DNA of 64,000 bases from Botryllus schlosseri (Eukaryota): contig CM119381.1 in the NCBI GenBank assembly GCA_051294905.1, forward strand, positions 15,252,001-15,316,000, given 5' to 3'. The position numbers and the translations under genes are program-made. This document shows, in pieces, positions 50,401-59,990 of this stretch (position 1 is its first letter; every line of letters starts with the position of its first letter). The notes below the pieces were generated by a model. It was not told where the DNA came from. It made no database searches and saw only the letters and a list, made by a program, of their open reading frames with translations.

Positions 50401-50621
50401 TGGCCGCATCTCCTGGGTATTTTGAAATCGATAGAGCATAAATATTTTATTTTCCGCCGTCTCACCGTACGGCAGTTTTGAATATGATTTCCTCCGCCGT
50501 GCGTACGCGGGGAATAAAGTTTTGCGGTCGAAAAAAACTCCTTTACGGTCGTGCATGAGTGATCATTTGTCATTATCGAGAATCGACACGGCGGTACGTC
50601 GCCGCTTTCCAGATTGAAAAC

Positions 50622-51100
50622 GGGTGCCTTTATTTTGTACATGCAAGCTAATGAAAAGCTAATGCAGCTAATTAAGCTAAGGAAAAGCTAATTAAGCTAA
50701 TGAAAGGCTAATTAAGCTAATGAAAAGCTAAGTAAGCTAATGAAAAGCTAATGAAAAGCTAATTAAGCTAATGAAAAAGTAAGCTAATGAAAAGTAAGCT
50801 AATGAAAAGCTAATGAAGCTAATTAAGCTAATGAAAAGCTAAGTAAGCTAATGAAAAGCTAATGAAAAGCTAATTAAGCTAATGAAAAAGTAAGCTAATG
50901 AAAAGTAAGCTAATGAAAAGCTAATGAAGCTAATTAAGCTAATGAAAAGCTAATGAAAAGCTAATGAAAAGCTAAGTAAGCTAATGAAAAGCTAATGAAA
51001 AGCTAATTAAGCTAATGAAAAAGTAAGCTAATGAAAAGTAAGCTAACGAAAAGCTAATGAAACCAGCTAATGTAAAAATGAAGCCAATGAAGCAAGGAAG
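50622..51100 (+). repeat. Left TIR of MULE, tandem array of AAGCTAAT(GAA/T) units
   Basis: 9-11-bp units read directly; the first ~220 bp are the exact reverse complement of the right end. Inner boundary approximate. Confidence 0.95.
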
Positions 51101-51278
51101 TAAGTCCAGATTAGTATTTTGCTCATATGATTCTGGATGTATCAAATCCGAAATTTTAAATCCAAGTTTAGAATCTGGATATTCGATTCTCAATAGGGAT
51201 TTTTGAATTATGATTGCAATAGTGCCAATTCAGACCTAACTGCACCCTGCAAACCGGAAGATTTGACGGCACCGACAG

Positions 51279-51542
51279 GTTTGTTTTGGGGTGTTCATGG
51301 TGTGTCTCGACTACTATGGTCATGGTCATGGTCATTTACACCAGGCAATTTTCTACATTTTTATTCCGTAGCGGCCGACTTGTACAACGGCCCACATTCT
51401 TGGCTTTTATAAGACACCGCTTACACGGATGAGATGGCACCTAGGTCCTAGGTAGGAATTCTGGAGCCGACCTCTGTCGGACTCGAACCCACAACCCATT
51501 GGTGTTGCAGCTGTGGATTATACCACTACGTTATCTCGCCAC
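51279..51542 (-). mobile_element. SINE copy inside the MULE
   Basis: Same head (GTGGCGAGATA...GGGTTCGAGTCC in reverse complement) and 3' end as the other copies; internal deletion; no clear TSD. Confidence 0.88.
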
Positions 51543-52329
51543 TACATACAGCGGTGATCTCTGACGAAGTTTTTCTGCCTACTCGGTGCTAAAGTGCCAG
51601 CATGCCTAACATGATAATGTGGCCGGTTATGTTTGCAAACTGAATTTGATAGCGTGAACGAACATGAACATTGAACATCAACGACGTTTCAAAGGGAGTT
51701 CATTTCTTGATGGTAATTAGTTAGGAAGGCAAGGAGGATTTGAAAACAGCATTGTCTCACAAGCTCCAGCATGCCTGCTATCAATCAACGCATCATACAA
51801 AACTGGATTAACCCGTTTCGGAACGCGATATGTCTGGTAAACCGAATTCGCGAGGATATTGGTTGCGGGCTTGACAGTAATTTTTATTTTACAAATAAAC
51901 TTCACATCATGATCGACAGATTATAATTTAGATTATTGATCGTTTTCTTTAGAACTGAATCATTCTGCGCATAATTTCAAAATTGGGAAGACTTCTTTTT
52001 CGTTACCTTTGCGAAACCTAAATGACGTACTAGTGAGACATCGGCACCATTGTCATCCTGATAATGAGCAATGAGTAAACTAAAGTTGAAAACGTCCGGA
52101 TATGTACTACTTTGTAATTGCATATATTTGCTGCGCTGAATTGGGATATTCACGTATCATTTCTGCTTTATAATATTTCACAGGGAGGGGCAAGGTATAG
52201 CCTATCGACTAGCGAGTCGTAACGCATTCACGCTCGTGATCTTTTATTATAATATCCGACAAGAATAATGCTTAACTAGCGCGGAATATACTTGACTAGT
52301 TCCGCTTTAGTTCGCTTGAATATAGCCTA

Positions 52330-52585
52330 TTCACAGCTCCGCAGCTGCAAAACGAATTGGTTGGGGGTTCGAATCAGGCCCAAGTCGGTTCCAGTATTCC
52401 TACCCAAGTGTTTCTGGTTTAGGGTGTGGGCTTGTACTGCTCGTACGATCCGCGTAGACGGTGTCTTGCAAAGGCCCCGACCCATAATAGTCGGTGGATC
52501 AGGAACCGTAATAACGAATACCAGCCTGGTGTAAAATGACCAATGACCATCCTATAGTTGTAGAAACACCATTAATACCAACCTA
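52330..52585 (+). mobile_element. Diverged SINE-family copy inside the MULE, upstream of the ORF
   Basis: GCTGCAA...GGTTCGAATC...TTCCTACCCAAGTGTT...CGGTGTCTT...GCCTGGTGTAAAATGACC...AAACACCAT blocks are collinear with the 12909 copy. Boundaries approximate. Confidence 0.75.
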
Positions 52586-52906
52586 CTACGTTAGTGTGAC
52601 CACTGATAAGTGTGACTAACTGTCTCTAACATTAATTTTGTAATTCACATATCGATACATTTGTACGTGTACTTGAGGTAGAGTTGCAACGTCACCACGT
52701 CACCACAGAGTTAACATGTGTTTATCAAAGAACCTGATTGTGACGTCCCCTCGCTTCAGAAATTGTGCAAAATTTGCAACTTTCCCCGCGCGGCAGCGCT
52801 CGTAGCAATCCCATTGGGGTCATCATTTGAGGTAGCGAAGGACAGTGGAAAGGATAGCAATTCTCATTGTTTTTTCCGCAACAACGTTGCGTTTTCGTCT
52901 TGGATT

Positions 52907-55882
52907 ATGTCTCATCCTTGTACTGTTTGCGGACTTGATTGTTTAAAGTCCGACGAGTACGTCGAATGCTACGAATGCAACAGATACTCTCACTGTTCTT
53001 GTGCGAAGATCGGTAGCTTCAATGAGCGGAAAATCCAGATTTTCATATGTCGTTGTTGCATATTCTTCGAAGGTGAATTCAATTATGAGTGGGCATTGCA
53101 ACATATTAGAGCAAATCCGGAACATTGTACAGCTATAAAACGGATTCTTCGTTTGTATAAAGTACTCGAGCCTGATCGGAGCATGCCAAATGAGGCAGCA
53201 GTAGTGGATGAGGTTTCACTTATGATTTTGAAGCAGTTTCATTATATCATCACCACGGATCACACGGCCTTGCGAGTTGATGGCGATGGGAATTGTTTTT
53301 ACCGCGCAATGTCGCTTGCCTTATACGGCACTGCGAAACACCACTTGCGCTTGAGGCTTCTGACCGCGCTCGAAATTATTGAGCATCCGAAATATTATGA
53401 CGAAGACGCAGAGGGATTTGTTGACCTTATAGCTGACGTTAGAATTGTGTCATCGCCTTATGCCAGTCTGGTACAAAAAGCAAGCATTCCGGGGCATTGG
53501 TCCGAGATGATGCATATTTACGCATTGAGTGCCGCCCTTGGCTCCGCGATTCGCTCATATTATCCGTCAACATTGGCAAATGAATACCTGACAGAACCGT
53601 TCACGCGCAAATGTTGCGGCCGGGGTGTGTCGAAATTTGCCATACCAGTTGCGACTCTGATGTGGACACAAACTACCGTGCCCACGACAAGCAATCCATT
53701 TCGACCGAATCACTTCGTGCCAATCATCAAAATCACCGATCTGATTTCAAGTGATCCAAATAGTTTATGCGAATCAAAACTGAAATCGGAGGATCAGAAA
53801 AGCGACATTGATAAGCCGAATGTACGCGAAAAAGACGACATTGACAAGCCGAATATACGCGAACAAGACGACTTCAAAACGTTTCATAAGAGCGAACTTG
53901 GCGATGTGAATGCTAATAAACAACAGCATTCGCTCCTAGAAAGCAGTATCCTAAGTGAAGATTCGCCTATTGACCAAATGAATGGGGAACAGATGAATTC
54001 TGAAATAGGAGAAGTTGCTGACGGAGACAAAACCAAATCAGTTCTACCTAACCTGAACAATGAGCTGAACAATGAAACGAAGCTGCCCTTTAACGAGTTT
54101 TTGAAAATTGAGGATGTGGTGAAAAAAATTATGGATTGTAAAAACGCCCTTTCGAAGATTCCTCCAGGACGGAAAGACAATTGTTACATTATCGTTGATT
54201 TTAAAACAAACATACTTCGAAAGGCTGCTAAAATTCATCGCATATTTTATGATGACATGGGAGCTTGGACGAAAACCAAGCAAACATATTCATATTACTT
54301 GAAGACCGAGGACCGACTCAGGTATGTATACAAGCCGCGGTGCCACAGGGGTGCTATTTGTACCCTAAAAATGAAGGAGTACTTGCCGTTATCACCGCAG
54401 CCTTCTCCAGGTGACGTACTCATGGTTGGGCGATACTACGCTAAATCAAAGAACAACCCTGGTTACGAAAAACGTATAAGCTGGATTGAAAGCGGACCAT
54501 CGGATCCATGTAATGTGTGTATCGTGGAGTACAAGGGTATATCTGGGGACTGCAGTCCACACGGAAACAGCTCTGTGAACTTTCAAAATTACATCCGCAC
54601 TCCGCCCAGCACTATTGAGAAGATAAAGGAAAAGGTTACATACGGGACAGGAAAGCGAGTTTACGTTGATCTTCAAAATGATTCCGAAAGTATTTCGCAA
54701 ATGCCTCGGAATATAAGTCAGATCCACCACACTAAGCACCGGGAAAAAGTAAGCAAAGAAGGGCACAGTAGCCTGTCGCGAGACTGTTATGCAGACGAAC
54801 TTTTGGATGTCATAAACATGATGCACACGGAAAAATTTGTGAGAAGAGTCATCCATTCTCCAGCAAAAGCATCCAGCATAATTGTATACACCGATGATCA
54901 AATAACAGATCTTAAAAAGATGTGTTGTACTGGAAAAACTGTACTTGGAATTGACAAGACATACAACCTAGGCAATGTGTACGCTACTGTAGCAGTTTTC
55001 AAAAACGTGAAGATGATTAGCACCAGAACGCAGGAAAATCCGATTTTCATTGGTCCCATATATCTCCACCATAGGTCAGATAGAGGGACATTTAACGACT
55101 TCTTCAGTCATCTTAGCTCCGTTATAGGAGGTACTTTCGATCACCTTGTCGTGGGGACAGACGACGAAATTGCACTACACTCAGCAATAGAAAATTCGTT
55201 CAAAAACTGCAAGCACGTTCTCTGTGTCAATCATTTAAAGACAAATTTGGTCGACAAACTTCAGCACGGCATCGGTGCAAGCAAGCATTTGAGAAAAAGT
55301 CTGGTGAATCAAGTCTTCAATCTGTTGGATAGCAAGGACGAAATTGAATTTAATCGAAGAGAAGAAGACCTACTCACTAGGTGCCATAGCATATGCCCAA
55401 TGCTGGTCACATACTTACAAAATAGATTGCTACCGTTGTTGCGAAAAAAGGTCTGGCAAATGCGTAGCTTTATCGGCGCCGAGCACAAATGGTTCACCAA
55501 TAACAACTGCGAGAGCATGAACCATGTTCTCAAGCGATTGACAGATTGGAAAAAGAAAAAGTTACCAGATCTAATTAATCTACTCAAATCAGCGATCACT
55601 TCACAATACTTGGATGTACGAAAGAGTATCACAGGCCGTGGTACTTTTACCCTTGCTGAGAATTGTAAAAATTATTTGGTATCTCCTTGGGATTGGGACG
55701 ACATGCCAAAAGACGAGCAAGACCGTTCATTTCAGCAGTTAATGAATTTTCCCGCCCCGACAGCCTGTAAGCTGCCTAAATCATTATCACTCTCCACTGA
55801 TGGGCAATTGATGGCGCATAATCCTTCGAAACGAAGTGGCAGCAAGCCAGGAGGAACTAAATGCAAAAGAAAAGTTCGTTGA
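52907..55882 (+). CDS. MULE transposase with N-terminal PHD finger and OTU domain (991 aa from first ATG; frame open from 52715)
   Basis: PHD C4HC3 (CTVC...CYEC...HCSC...CRC, 52919-53059); OTU GDGNC (Cys 53294) and PNHFVP (His 53711); MULE motifs GIDKTY (D 54953), GTDDE (D 55160), CVNH (CxxH, 55223-55234), NCESMN (E 55511); basic C-terminus. No stops or frameshifts. Confidence 0.93.
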   Translation: MSHPCTVCGLDCLKSDEYVECYECNRYSHCSCAKIGSFNERKIQIFICRCCIFFEGEFNYEWALQHIRANPEHCTAIKRILRLYKVLEPDRSMPNEAAVVDEVSLMILKQFHYIITTDHTALRVDGDGNCFYRAMSLALYGTAKHHLRLRLLTALEIIEHPKYYDEDAEGFVDLIADVRIVSSPYASLVQKASIPGHWSEMMHIYALSAALGSAIRSYYPSTLANEYLTEPFTRKCCGRGVSKFAIPVATLMWTQTTVPTTSNPFRPNHFVPIIKITDLISSDPNSLCESKLKSEDQKSDIDKPNVREKDDIDKPNIREQDDFKTFHKSELGDVNANKQQHSLLESSILSEDSPIDQMNGEQMNSEIGEVADGDKTKSVLPNLNNELNNETKLPFNEFLKIEDVVKKIMDCKNALSKIPPGRKDNCYIIVDFKTNILRKAAKIHRIFYDDMGAWTKTKQTYSYYLKTEDRLRYVYKPRCHRGAICTLKMKEYLPLSPQPSPGDVLMVGRYYAKSKNNPGYEKRISWIESGPSDPCNVCIVEYKGISGDCSPHGNSSVNFQNYIRTPPSTIEKIKEKVTYGTGKRVYVDLQNDSESISQMPRNISQIHHTKHREKVSKEGHSSLSRDCYADELLDVINMMHTEKFVRRVIHSPAKASSIIVYTDDQITDLKKMCCTGKTVLGIDKTYNLGNVYATVAVFKNVKMISTRTQENPIFIGPIYLHHRSDRGTFNDFFSHLSSVIGGTFDHLVVGTDDEIALHSAIENSFKNCKHVLCVNHLKTNLVDKLQHGIGASKHLRKSLVNQVFNLLDSKDEIEFNRREEDLLTRCHSICPMLVTYLQNRLLPLLRKKVWQMRSFIGAEHKWFTNNNCESMNHVLKRLTDWKKKKLPDLINLLKSAITSQYLDVRKSITGRGTFTLAENCKNYLVSPWDWDDMPKDEQDRSFQQLMNFPAPTACKLPKSLSLSTDGQLMAHNPSKRSGSKPGGTKCKRKVR

Positions 55883-56761
55883 GCTGTAACTAAAGAAAAT
55901 CAAGTTCATAAATGCACTGTACATTTGCAGCAATTGTGCCTATACTGCCAGCATGAACAATTGAACATATACAACATGTACAACATTTTCTGTCTGCAAG
56001 TACTGAAATCCCTGTCCATATTGGCGTATTTCCTTTCGTTGTCGTAATTTTCTGCAAGTGAATGCTCAGTTTCGTTTTATATGTTGCTATATTTTTCAAT
56101 ACAGTGTTACGCTTGCTCGTGTTTCAAAACTGAAAATTATCACCCAATGACATGAACAGCAAGGATGAGATGGCGTATTTCGGTTTCTCCCGAATGTGAG
56201 GTTGCCTCAACGAACCGGTGATCCGCTAAATGAGTTGACAGATTTTTTCACGACGGATTCCTTTTCTGTCGTTATCGTACCTTTTTAACCAGACTGGATA
56301 TCGGCACTGATGTTACGCGCCTGCGGCTATGGGTTGTCGGGACAGCTATCGTTTGGTAGAGTACAGGTTTAACCAGAGCAAACAGTTCGCAGGAGAGAAA
56401 AAGTTCTATAACTGGTCTAGTTAAGCAATGTAGGGTCAATATATTTTGTAAAGAGAAAGCTACGTTTTCATTGGCACAATGTTCAACCTAAAATCGGCGA
56501 TGTGTAGTGGTTCCAAATATAATAATTTTCATAGTCATTGGGAACGATAAAGTAGCAACATTTTCATAGTCGTAAATGAGTATATCACGAGTATTTTCAA
56601 TAATATCGCGAGATAGTACTCGCAGCATAGTTTATTTATAAACGAGGCTGGCATTGATGTCGGTTAATAATTATTATTTCAAAGATACCAATTCAGCGTC
56701 AATCAACAAACGCACACATTTAGCAATTGCAATCAGCGAAGTTTTTCGATGCGTGGTGTTC

Positions 56762-57219
56762 AATTAGCTTCCTTGTTACATTAGCTTCATTAGTTTTTCA
56801 TTACCTTGTTTCATTAGATTTTGATTAGCTTACTTTTCATTACCTTAATTGCTTTTAATTAGCTTCATTAGCTTTTCATTAGCTTACTTTTCATTAGCTT
56901 ACTTTTTCATTAGCGTAATTAGCTTTTCATTAGCTTAATTAGCTTAATTAGCTTTTCATTAGCTTACTTTTCATTAGCTTACTTTTTCATTAGCTTAATT
57001 AGCTTTTCATTAGCTTAATTAGCTTCATTAGCTTTTCATTAGCTTACTTTTCATTAGCTTACTTTTTCATTAGCTTAATTAGCTTTTCATTAGCTTTTCA
57101 TTAGCTTACTTAGCTTTTCATTAGCTTAATTAGCCTTTCATTAGCTTAATTAGCTTTTCCTTAGCTTAATTAGCTGCATTAGCTTTTCATTAGCTTGCAT
57201 GTACAAAATAAAGGCACCC
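56762..57219 (-). repeat. Right TIR of MULE, inverted AAGCTAAT array
   Basis: ATTAGCTT units; matches the left TIR and degenerates inward. Confidence 0.95.
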
Positions 57220-59990
57220 ATTGAAAACGGCTGGTTCTGGATACTGCAAAGTGGTTATTTATACAACTATCTCTCTCTACGGTCGATTGAACAATTTTCA
57301 CGGTTGCGTTAACAGCTGAACACTCTCCTTACTTGCAAATTCGCGCTACATCGTTCCGATTCGTTTTTAATATTCAAATTTTGAGTGCCGTGGGATCTCG
57401 CTCGTTTTCACGTGGCATGCACGAAATATGCAAAATTTGTATGCACTCTCAATTCAAAGTTGAAACCTGTATGCACTCTGCGTACCCACACCTACAGTCG
57501 CACAAGCATTAATATTTTCATATCTGCAAAAACAAATTTCAATGGTGTATCGTACCAACAGAAGCGGTCAAAGTCGTCACCTGTGATACTCAAGTAGAAG
57601 TAAAATTTCGAAATTTCAATTCTATTGCAAGTAAAAGTACCTCTTTCCAAGTAACTGAACAGTAAGCATTCGTGGCCTAGTTTTGCGTAAAGGACTGAAA
57701 ACTCTGAAGTAAAGTAGTGCAAGTACTCAAATATGATTACAGTACTCCAAATAAGTATAAGTACTGGTCAGTGACCACATCTGAGTACCATATACACATT
57801 CAGACAGACACCTCATAGAACGGTAAAGGTCACCGTCTTTCTCAAGGAGTTCAATAAGCAAACAATGCGGTGCCGTAAATTTGCATATGAAACGATTCTC
57901 TGGAAAGAGGAGTCGAAGCTCTGTTATTCTATTAACTTGTGATTCGGCCTATTCAAGCCGGCTCTAGACGTGTGAGGTATATCGAGGTCGTTGGCGCGTA
58001 ACAGCCTCATTAGCAGCGGCGCTCTTGCACTTCGATTGCCAACAGATTCGTTATATGGAGAGATAGACCCTACTATGATGTAAATGACAGCATTAAAAGA
58101 CCGGCTCATGCCTAACTCTACCGGAGAAACGGCAAGCGCTCGTACCACGTCTAGACAAGACGTTGTCGTTTTTCTGCATGCTAAAGGATGGCCGATTTGT
58201 TTAAGCCTCTCCCCATTAGCGGACGATTCATCATATCGAGATTATCTTGTATGTTGACAGAACGCGCAACGGTTGCCATTTCGCAGCCCGAAGCAGAGGG
58301 TGGCCAATACGGTAGCGAAAACGGGCGATAAGTTACCTTTGTCGCGCAATGCGTAATTTTTTATTTGCAGTAGGGCGCAAAGCATATTTTAACGGCTGTC
58401 GTCAGTACTCCCCGCCTTATCGTGATTCGATCATACACGCAGTCTCATAGGAAATAATGACATTATTCTGTATGATTGACATATTGGGTATGTTCGACTG
58501 GTAGAAAAATACAGGCGCGCTGTCTTTACATGACAGTTGTCTCGTACGCCCGATGATGGCCACATCGCGCTGAACCTTGGGTGACCCTCGGTACGAGTGT
58601 AAGCCTTGTAAATTCTTTAGGGACATCGACGCGGGCCGTGAACCATTGTCATGCTGTGGTGATTCGGGAACTTTGTTTGTCGTACGCCAGCTTGAAATCT
58701 ATTTGTGAAGGCTTCTGTTATTATTGCTTGAGCTTCTGTTTACCCCGAGAGGTCAGTTGACGGAGAACGCTGTGCAAACATTGAAATGCCGTCTCGATTT
58801 TGTAACGTTGCTCCCAGCGATGTAGATTGCAGATGAAGATGGGTAGCGTGATCATCCAAAAATGCTGAAAACCGTGCGCGACTTGCTGACGACGCGGTTG
58901 CTGACATTCACCTTTGACCTCATAAGCGCGTTGCCACTTTTTGCGATGTTTCAATACTCAGATTCGTAGGTTTGATGGCCTACCAGAACGTTTCCACAAT
59001 TAGTCAGCCAACGTAAACATTTGTGTTTTGTAACATGAAACTGATATTGATATATCCACTGCAAACCGGGACTTGGTTTACGCTTGCAGAGGCACAACCG
59101 GTTGATCTTGAAACCCCGATTAAAATGGCGCGCGTTCTCCATTTTGTATCCGGGTCGTATGCGGCGTGTTTACCTACCAGGCGCACACAGATTTCGTTCA
59201 CTAAATACCAACCTATGTACTAGGGCTGCAATACAGCGCTAGATTAAATCCGGCATTGCGTAATCGCGCCTGGAAGCCTGTATATCGTCACGTTTGCCAG
59301 ATAGCAGAGCCCCGAGAGTGGTTTCGGGACAAGGGTGCAATTAAATTATAACTCAGGAACTTGAAGAAAAGTGGAACGAGTTCATGCGGTGCGCATAAAT
59401 ATATGCTACATGCTTGTAGTCCGGCCGCTGATTAATGCTCGGGAATTACTCTAAATATACTAGTATTCGTAAAACAAGTTTCCGTTGTAGTGGCCTCTGA
59501 TGTCATCATCGATTACGTAAAGAGGCACAGTCTGCTTCTGCACTAAAGAGATAATGTCGATCTGTGTGATTTTGTTGGGATGTTTTTATGCGCTTCCTCA
59601 TATATCCATACCTGCCATTCACTGGCAGGCAATGTCCGATCCGTAAAGTACTTCTGGCTGGATCGGAATTGGCGATAAAAGTCCCCTTTACGCTTCTCAA
59701 ACGTTGGAAAATGCCCGCTCTCGGGGGACGAAAGCCAACCCGCTGCGTTGCCGAATAGCTCTTAGCTCGGATGGGGTTAATGCGTTACGCGGAAATATTG
59801 CAAAATTCGATGGAAGTGTTAATTATTCAAGCAGTCGAGATTTCTTACGGCGTCGCTTGATTCGAAGTGATTCGGCGGTACCGACGTCACGTGCCACTAG
59901 TGGAATTGTTTCGTCACAAAAGTCCACGTTAGCGTGTTATCCGTTCGTGAAGTCACGTGACTCATGTGGTGGATGCGTTTTGTCTTCCAG

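Follow-up and report, generated by a model that had tools for sequence, protein, structure and literature searches.

What kind of transposon encodes a transposase, a PHD finger and an OTU protease in a single protein, and do the two additional domains belong to its biology or to the accidents of one copy? We investigated this question at an element of 6598 bp from Botryllus schlosseri, located at positions 50622–57219 of a stretch of 64,000 nt (assembly GCA_051294905.1, contig CM119381.1, 15,252,001–15,316,000 of the forward strand) that was analysed as a whole and is called the window here. Our analysis indicates that the element is very probably a young, structurally complete, autonomous-type cut-and-paste Mutator-like element (MULE), that it belongs to a conserved animal lineage, and that the lineage carries a PHD finger and an OTU protease at the N terminus of its transposase.

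An intact element with long inverted ends

The left end of the element starts at 50622 with GGGTGCCTTT and the right end closes at 57219 as its exact reverse complement. The 27-nt tip GGGTGCCTTTATTTTGTACATGCAAGC is found in the window at these two sites only (50622 on the forward strand and 57219 on the reverse strand), against a chance expectation of 0. From the tips inward the two ends match exactly over 221 nt, are then offset by a 31-nt indel corresponding to about three repeat units, and remain similar up to ~480 nt; a second estimate gives inverted-repeat arms of 275 nt at 95%. Beyond a unique 24-nt tip, both arms are arrays of 9–11-nt units. The 7-nt core of these units is AGCTAAT, of which the left arm has 33 copies, the right arm 29 in inverted orientation and the remaining ~63 kb of the window 6; the units are probable, if putative, binding sites of the transposase.

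A sequence-only reading of this locus had claimed a 9-bp target-site duplication, which we recovered as a perfect ATTGAAAAC on each side, and ~220 bp of exact identity in the terminal inverted repeats, a figure that is right for the identical stretch (221 nt) but too short for the length of the inverted ends themselves (~480 bp). Mutator elements and MULEs are recognized by a duplication of 9–11 bp and long inverted ends, and the element has both. Between its arms lies the single uninterrupted open reading frame (ORF) that had also been reported, 991 codons from the first ATG at 52907 to a stop at 55880–55882 with no internal stop. Alignments of the encoded protein with the homologues P0026 and P0071 cover residues 2–985 in both cases, the 63 in-frame codons 5′ of the ATG have no counterpart in homologues, and the PHD fingers of homologues likewise begin no more than 12 residues after the first methionine. 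Together, the identical tips, the perfect duplication and the open frame point to a recent insertion.

Domain architecture of the transposase

Pfam, profile searches and an AlphaFold model all back the domain order that had been proposed from the sequence, namely, from the N to the C terminus, PHD finger, OTU domain, disordered linker, beta-rich domain of DNA-binding type and MULE DDE core. The model, built from 107 family sequences, has a mean predicted local distance difference test score (pLDDT) of 82.9 and comprises the PHD finger, a helical extension with the OTU domain (residues 60–283), the linker (284–387), the beta-rich domain (390–560) and an RNase H-like core with a helical insertion (565–950).

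The C-terminal core places the protein among MULE transposases. Pfam MULE matches the Botryllus copy with E 5e-5 and 24.1 bits, under the cut-off of 27.6, whereas homologues score 31–33 bits and exceed it; Transposase_mut matches with E 1.2e-3, slightly under its cut-off. D683, D752 and E869 are conserved in the family, and the motif C773-V-N-H776, 21 residues past D752, is at least 85% conserved in 107 sequences. In Foldseek searches the C-terminal two thirds of the model matched FAR1/FRS proteins (E 5e-12), Drosophila NOF-FB (E 1.9e-9) and ISCth4, an IS256-family transposase with solved complexes (E 7e-7), along with FHY3, Kluyveromyces lactis alpha3 and ZSWIM1/3. A MULE/IS256-type core, the D-D-E residues, the CxxH motif and the 9-bp duplication thus bear out the earlier assignment to Mutator.

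The fusion of this core to an OTU domain, likewise part of the earlier claim, was confirmed. Pfam OTU (PF02338) matches with 25.9 bits, exceeding its curated cut-off of 23.3, and an OTU family profile (alignment A1) matches OTUD1 with E 1.5e-7. The OTU part of the model superposes on OTUD3 and OTUD1 in Foldseek with template modelling (TM) scores by target of 0.71–0.75, and the superposition extends to DUBA, Cezanne, otubains and nairovirus OTUs. The catalytic Cys and His are retained: D127, C130 and H269 show no variation in 14 sequences and reach at least 85% conservation in 107, and the GDGNC and PNHF motifs are invariant in alignment A1.

PHD fingers are readers of histone tails, and the N terminus of the protein has the ligand spacing of a canonical PHD finger (C5-x2-C8-x12-C21-x2-C24-x4-H29-x2-C32-x15-C48-x2-C51). 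All eight zinc ligands are invariant among nine family members, and a profile of these nine matches solved PHD fingers with E values of 1e-9 to 1e-5, Pygopus being the best (E 1.2e-9) and DIDO1, MLL PHD3, BPTF and TAF3 following. The finger of the Styela homologue scores 26.8 bits and passes the Pfam cut-off, and the Styela and Lingula proteins are recorded under a Pygopus-type PHD family. The family consensus has a Tyr before the first Cys and a Trp before the His ligand, as do Pygopus-type readers. We regard the Botryllus finger as a PHD finger, as it had been called, because of the eight invariant ligands and the family profile, although its own Pfam score is weak.

Between the linker and the catalytic core, the beta-rich domain (residues 388–565) was modelled alone with a pLDDT of 92. 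Its best matches among Swiss-Prot models are 13 CAMTA CG-1 domains from plants, mammals and a nematode (E 1.5e-4 to 6e-2, TM by query ~0.42), followed by WRKY and NAC domains (E ~0.1–0.2). In the full model the domain aligns with the N-terminal regions of FAR1/FRS proteins, Pfam CG-1 is touched weakly by 7 of 90 family members, and a WRKY-GCM1-type check of the domain found no conserved four-ligand metal site. Judging from the models, the domain is likely to bind DNA. Its possible homology to the CAMTA CG-1 domain, suggested by the fold comparison, is a weaker parallel lead, and we found no literature linking CG-1 to the DNA-binding domains of MULEs.

Conservation of the fusion across animals

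An exhaustive HMMER search retrieved 4152 cluster representatives at E<=1e-3, 389 of them at E<=1e-30, and the closest homologues are 33–40% identical to the Botryllus protein. Named homologues, all uncharacterized or hypothetical, come from the brachiopod Lingula anatina, the bivalve Pinctada imbricata and the shrimp Penaeus vannamei, and further ones from Branchiostoma floridae, B. lanceolatum, Styela clava (three near-identical copies) and Ciona intestinalis. Several homologues have the full PHD-OTU-MULE order. Since this fusion is kept across phyla, it characterizes the family and is no accident of the Botryllus copy.

The domains also appear to have travelled together. Mean pairwise identity is 35.7% in the OTU core, 36.1% in the DDE core, 35.0% in the central domain and 11% in the linker, and OTU identities vary in step with DDE identities across the 42 proteins in which all three domains are present (Mantel r 0.47, a value reached in 0 of 2000 permutations). 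This co-variation and the similar constraint on OTU and DDE cores fit one old fusion that was inherited with the transposase under selection, and not a repeated capture of host fragments.

A second element with defined ends was found in Styela clava (L003:3176-11280, OZ123525.1). It spans ~8.1 kb, belongs to the same family and has a gene with introns; its arms consist of ~750 nt of 10-nt AACTGAATAC units, its tips start with GGGTGTTGTC (GGGTG), and it is flanked by a 9-bp duplication, CCGAGTGTC. At two other homologue loci (L001 and L002) the gene is not flanked by convincing inverted ends and is not preceded immediately upstream by PHD coding sequence, and the Lingula gene (L004) spans 10.5 kb, with an inverted repeat of just 53 nt whose copies lie 17 kb apart. 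These three loci were left out as evidence of transposon structure.

Three further observations concern individual relatives. The 676-residue Ciona intestinalis protein LOC108950575 (P0196) combines the family OTU domain with a long repetitive acidic linker and a CG-1-like domain and is without the DDE core, which makes it either a copy that was truncated or a derivative lacking the transposase. A clear animal-transposon OTU-MULE protein (P0009, ABW185_19850) is filed under a bacterial metagenome-assembled genome, Sedimenticola sp., and is probably host DNA binned with a symbiont. Homologue P0005, on a Logan contig of SRR8789034 (L001:3575-11578), is neighboured by large opposite-strand genes that may belong to another mobile element; one of them has protein-kinase and YqaJ exonuclease domains.

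Condition of the Botryllus copy and possible role of its added domains

Several observations weigh against the reading of the element as a complete and autonomous-type MULE with working PHD and OTU domains. The 64-kb window holds one copy, so current mobility is unsupported. The Botryllus protein deviates at 9–11 of ~85 highly conserved columns (10.7%), which ranks it 45th of 55 and in the divergent tail of the family, and in its central domain Cys451, a Cys in 93 of 103 homologues, is replaced by Met. Its PHD finger scores 13 bits against Pfam PHD (PF00628), whose curated cut-off is 24, and has His3 for the consensus Tyr and Tyr27 for the Trp at two positions that, in reader PHD fingers, line the methyl-lysine pocket. 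A PHD finger is seen in only 18 of the 64 OTU-bearing homologues of the alignment; its absence from the others may reflect gene calling or true loss. In most OTUs the third residue of the catalytic triad is an Asp or Asn two positions past the His; here H269 is followed by Phe-Val and the third residue is unassignable from sequence. The DNA-binding assignment draws on only moderate fold matches (E 1.5e-4, TM 0.42), and the domain at 388–565 gave no sequence-profile match to solved structures and a best Foldseek E of 0.27 among them.

Part of this list would also be expected of a copy that is intact in structure but dead or crippled, whose DNA-binding domain is damaged and whose PHD finger has degenerated, and that was mobilised in trans by a better copy. 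The Met at position 451, the 10.7% of deviating columns and the 13-bit PHD score all speak for such a copy, as does the Gly that stands in place of His508, one residue of a possible metal site formed by Cys451, Cys485, His508 and His552. Set against them are 991 open codons, the retention of every DDE and OTU catalytic residue and an AlphaFold model that is confident for each folded domain. Met451 recurs in three other homologues, and only about half of the family has the full metal tetrad, which is hence not essential, so that its loss from the Botryllus copy is indecisive. We consider a crippled copy a possibility to be kept in mind, though a doubtful one.

The OTU domain and PHD finger could instead be passengers, host fragments captured in the manner of Pack-MULEs and playing no part in transposition. 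MULEs are known to capture host fragments (PMC6446971), and many homologues match in the transposase part alone. Yet across at least five phyla the added domains keep one position and order, the catalytic motifs do not vary at 30–36% overall identity, the OTU domain equals the DDE core in conservation and diverges with it, and in two distant hosts it lies in frame with the transposase and within the inverted ends. With this pattern, passenger status is very hard to credit. An OTU domain that processes its own protein, cutting the linker and so freeing a PHD-OTU factor from the transposase, is scarcely easier to accept. The disordered linker of 104 residues between OTU and the remainder of the protein would suit such a role, and the OTU-like proteases of some RNA viruses, which process polyproteins as well as remove ubiquitin, offer a parallel. 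However, self-processing is made less likely by a linker that contains no Gly-Gly or LxGG-type site and, at 11% identity, shows no conserved cleavage site, and the nearest solved folds are the cellular deubiquitinases OTUD3, OTUD1, DUBA and Cezanne.

Among these accounts we lean towards an OTU domain that is an active isopeptidase, directed at ubiquitin or a ubiquitin-like modifier and serving the transposon, with a PHD finger that tethers the protein to the histone H3 tail. In such an element the central beta-rich domain would bind the arrays of 9–11-nt AGCTAAT-core units at both ends, and the DDE core would excise and reintegrate the element, its integration staggered by 9 bp and so giving rise to 9-bp duplications. 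Where transposition takes place, the OTU domain could keep the transposase, the chromatin nearby or repair proteins free of ubiquitin. As substrates, the candidates are the transposase itself, histones carrying ubiquitin, and repair or damage-tolerance factors at the break.

The sequence-only reading had offered a similar role, that of a combined chromatin reader and deubiquitinase, which is plausible, and had extended it to H2A ubiquitin at Polycomb-marked developmental loci such as Meis. That extension was drawn from the position of the transposon alone, and one insertion near a Meis-type exon says nothing on targeting. Our computed results lend no direct support to insertion guided by histone marks, to removal of H2A ubiquitin at Polycomb loci or to a link with Meis.

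Other features of the window

The features of the element are collected in Table 1. Neither internal non-coding region yielded further genes: the 5′ region contains no ORF of more than 80 residues and no domain match, and the 3′ region contains neither ORF nor domain match. Inside the linker, a 33-bp tandem repeat at 53798–53872 (2.3 copies, 90% matches) encodes a repeated DKPN-V/I-RE-K/Q-DD. At ~63800 on the forward strand, an exon holds the start of a Meis/Pknox-type TALE homeodomain (...LQVNNW). The transposon lies ~6.5 kb upstream of this exon on the same strand and is probably located in an intron.

Table 1 Features of the Botryllus element, in window positions
Feature	Position	Strand	Remarks
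Left target-site duplication ATTGAAAAC (9 bp)	50613..50621	.	Direct read; equals 57220–57228
Left terminal inverted repeat	50622..51100	+	24-nt tip GGGTGCC..., then ~40 tandem 9–11-nt units with AGCTAAT core
Internal 5′ non-coding region (presumed promoter and leader)	51101..52906	+	Between left arm and ORF
PHD-OTU-MULE transposase ORF, 991 residues plus stop	52907..55882	+	Uninterrupted; aligns end to end with homologues
PHD-type zinc finger, residues 5–51	52919..53059	+	C4HC3 ligands C5, C8, C21, C24, H29, C32, C48, C51
Helical extension and OTU cysteine protease, residues 60–283	53084..53755	+	Pfam, pLDDT ~95, Foldseek
OTU key residues			D127; C130 (codon at 53294); H269 (codon at 53711)
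Disordered acidic linker, residues 284–387 (104 residues)	53756..54067	+	pLDDT ~30; family identity 11%
Beta-rich domain, residues 388–565	54068..54601	+	CG-1/WRKY-like fold; probable DNA-binding domain
MULE RNase H-like DDE core, residues 640–900	54824..55606	+	D683, D752, E869, C773-x2-H776
Internal 3′ non-coding region	55883..56739	+	Between ORF stop and right arm
Right terminal inverted repeat	56740..57219	-	Left-arm tip and repeat array, inverted; 29 inverted AGCTAAT cores
Right target-site duplication ATTGAAAAC (9 bp)	57220..57228	.	Perfect match to left copy

A structural resemblance to Vertnin

The closest Swiss-Prot structural match of residues 60–292 is residues 8–260 of Vertnin (VRTN), found in six vertebrates with E 5e-9 to 4e-8 and 20–22% identity. 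Vertnin outranks every canonical OTU enzyme, the match takes in the helices that precede the OTU core, and Vertnin clusters were also returned by a feature search (score 0.78). Vertnin has been described as an inactive OTU homologue without catalytic residues and as a vertebrate developmental regulator (PMC10318531). Where the transposase has its beta-rich domain and DDE core, Vertnin carries HTH_Tnp_1-type and ‘Vertnin_mid’ domains, and the sub-model of domain 388–565 had no Vertnin match. A profile search with OTU alignment A5, with a length window admitting proteins of ~700 residues and E up to 10, returned family members only and no Vertnin; the link is therefore one of fold and feature searches. 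We found no literature linking Vertnin to a transposon.

From the modelled folds we tentatively raise the possibility, which we hold to be rather less than even, that the transposon OTU module with its family-specific N-terminal helices is the ancestor or the closest sister of the dead OTU-like domain of Vertnin. If so, the N-terminal half of a protein that regulates vertebral number and dorsoventral patterning would derive from a transposon protease module that became domesticated, and if the Vertnin and CG-1 resemblances both hold, two more host regulators would have been built from transposon parts.

Comparison with known systems

Fusions of mobility proteins to ubiquitin or ubiquitin-like proteases have arisen independently in MULE, Ginger1, Helitron and IS5-like transposons. 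To our knowledge, nobody has shown the reason for these fusions, and the literature yielded no functional study of transposons bearing OTU, Ulp1 or PHD domains. The Botryllus element, with a clean, intron-free gene of 991 codons, defined ends and relatives in the tractable Styela, Ciona and amphioxus, is a convenient substrate for testing the role of the protease. If the OTU domain were needed for transposition, or shielded the transposase or local chromatin from silencing, repair choice or degradation that depend on ubiquitin, a general interface between hosts and transposons would become visible.

The sequence-only reading had cautiously suggested that the architecture might be new. In the literature searched we found no description of an explicit PHD-OTU-MULE order with ends and duplication, and to that extent the suggestion stands; but an OTU-bearing MULE (PMC6446971) and transposons with Ulp1, PHD or OTU domains (PMC2836005) had already been catalogued. 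The sole literature record we found of OTU with a MULE or MuDR is the Hydra magnipapillata MULE MuDR-6_HM, listed with an ‘Ovarian Tumour Gene’ motif in group 14 of Table 1 of Dupeyron et al. 2019 (PMC6446971). MuDR-6_HM and the Botryllus element are both MULEs with a single ORF and an OTU motif (PMC6446971); compared by description only, MuDR-6_HM is listed without inverted ends, duplication or zinc finger, whereas the Botryllus element has ends of ~480 bp, a 9-bp duplication and a PHD finger.

Bao et al. 2010 reported OTU, Ulp1 and PHD domains in Ginger1 transposases, OTU in animal Helitrons and Ulp1 in hydra, lancelet and plant MULEs, and proposed that transposition involves the ubiquitin pathway (PMC2836005). 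The KAONASHI/KI-MULEs of Arabidopsis, the MuDR elements of hydra and lancelet, and Ginger1 resemble the Botryllus element in pairing a DDE transposase with a papain-fold ubiquitin or ubiquitin-like protease, sometimes with a PHD finger (PMC2836005). In the Arabidopsis, hydra and lancelet MULEs, however, the protease is Ulp1, which acts on SUMO, rather than OTU, and Ginger1 has an integrase-type transposase with a C-terminal protease, whereas in the Botryllus element OTU and PHD lie N-terminal to a MULE core. An origin from Ginger1 or a Helitron, both of which carry OTU, was considered and is ruled out by the MULE/IS256-type core and the 9-bp duplication.

Rehavkus is described with a PHD finger, a minisatellite, a 9-bp duplication and ends that reach 400 bp (PMC6446971), and by feature comparison its PHD finger, minisatellite repeats and 9-bp duplication are each present in some form in the Botryllus element. 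The NOF/Foldback branch is matched in fold through NOF-FB, yet FAR1-type proteins match the Botryllus transposase better, and for both Rehavkus and NOF/Foldback an OTU domain, such as the Botryllus element has, is unreported. FAR1/FHY3/FRS, alpha3, ZSWIM1/3 and ISCth4 share the fold of the DNA-binding-type region and DDE core, but neither the host genes among them (FAR1/FHY3/FRS, alpha3 and ZSWIM1/3, all domesticated MULE transposases) nor the bacterial IS256-family insertion sequences have a PHD finger or OTU domain. The Botryllus element is a well-preserved member of an already known kind of transposon, one that had been catalogued in outline.

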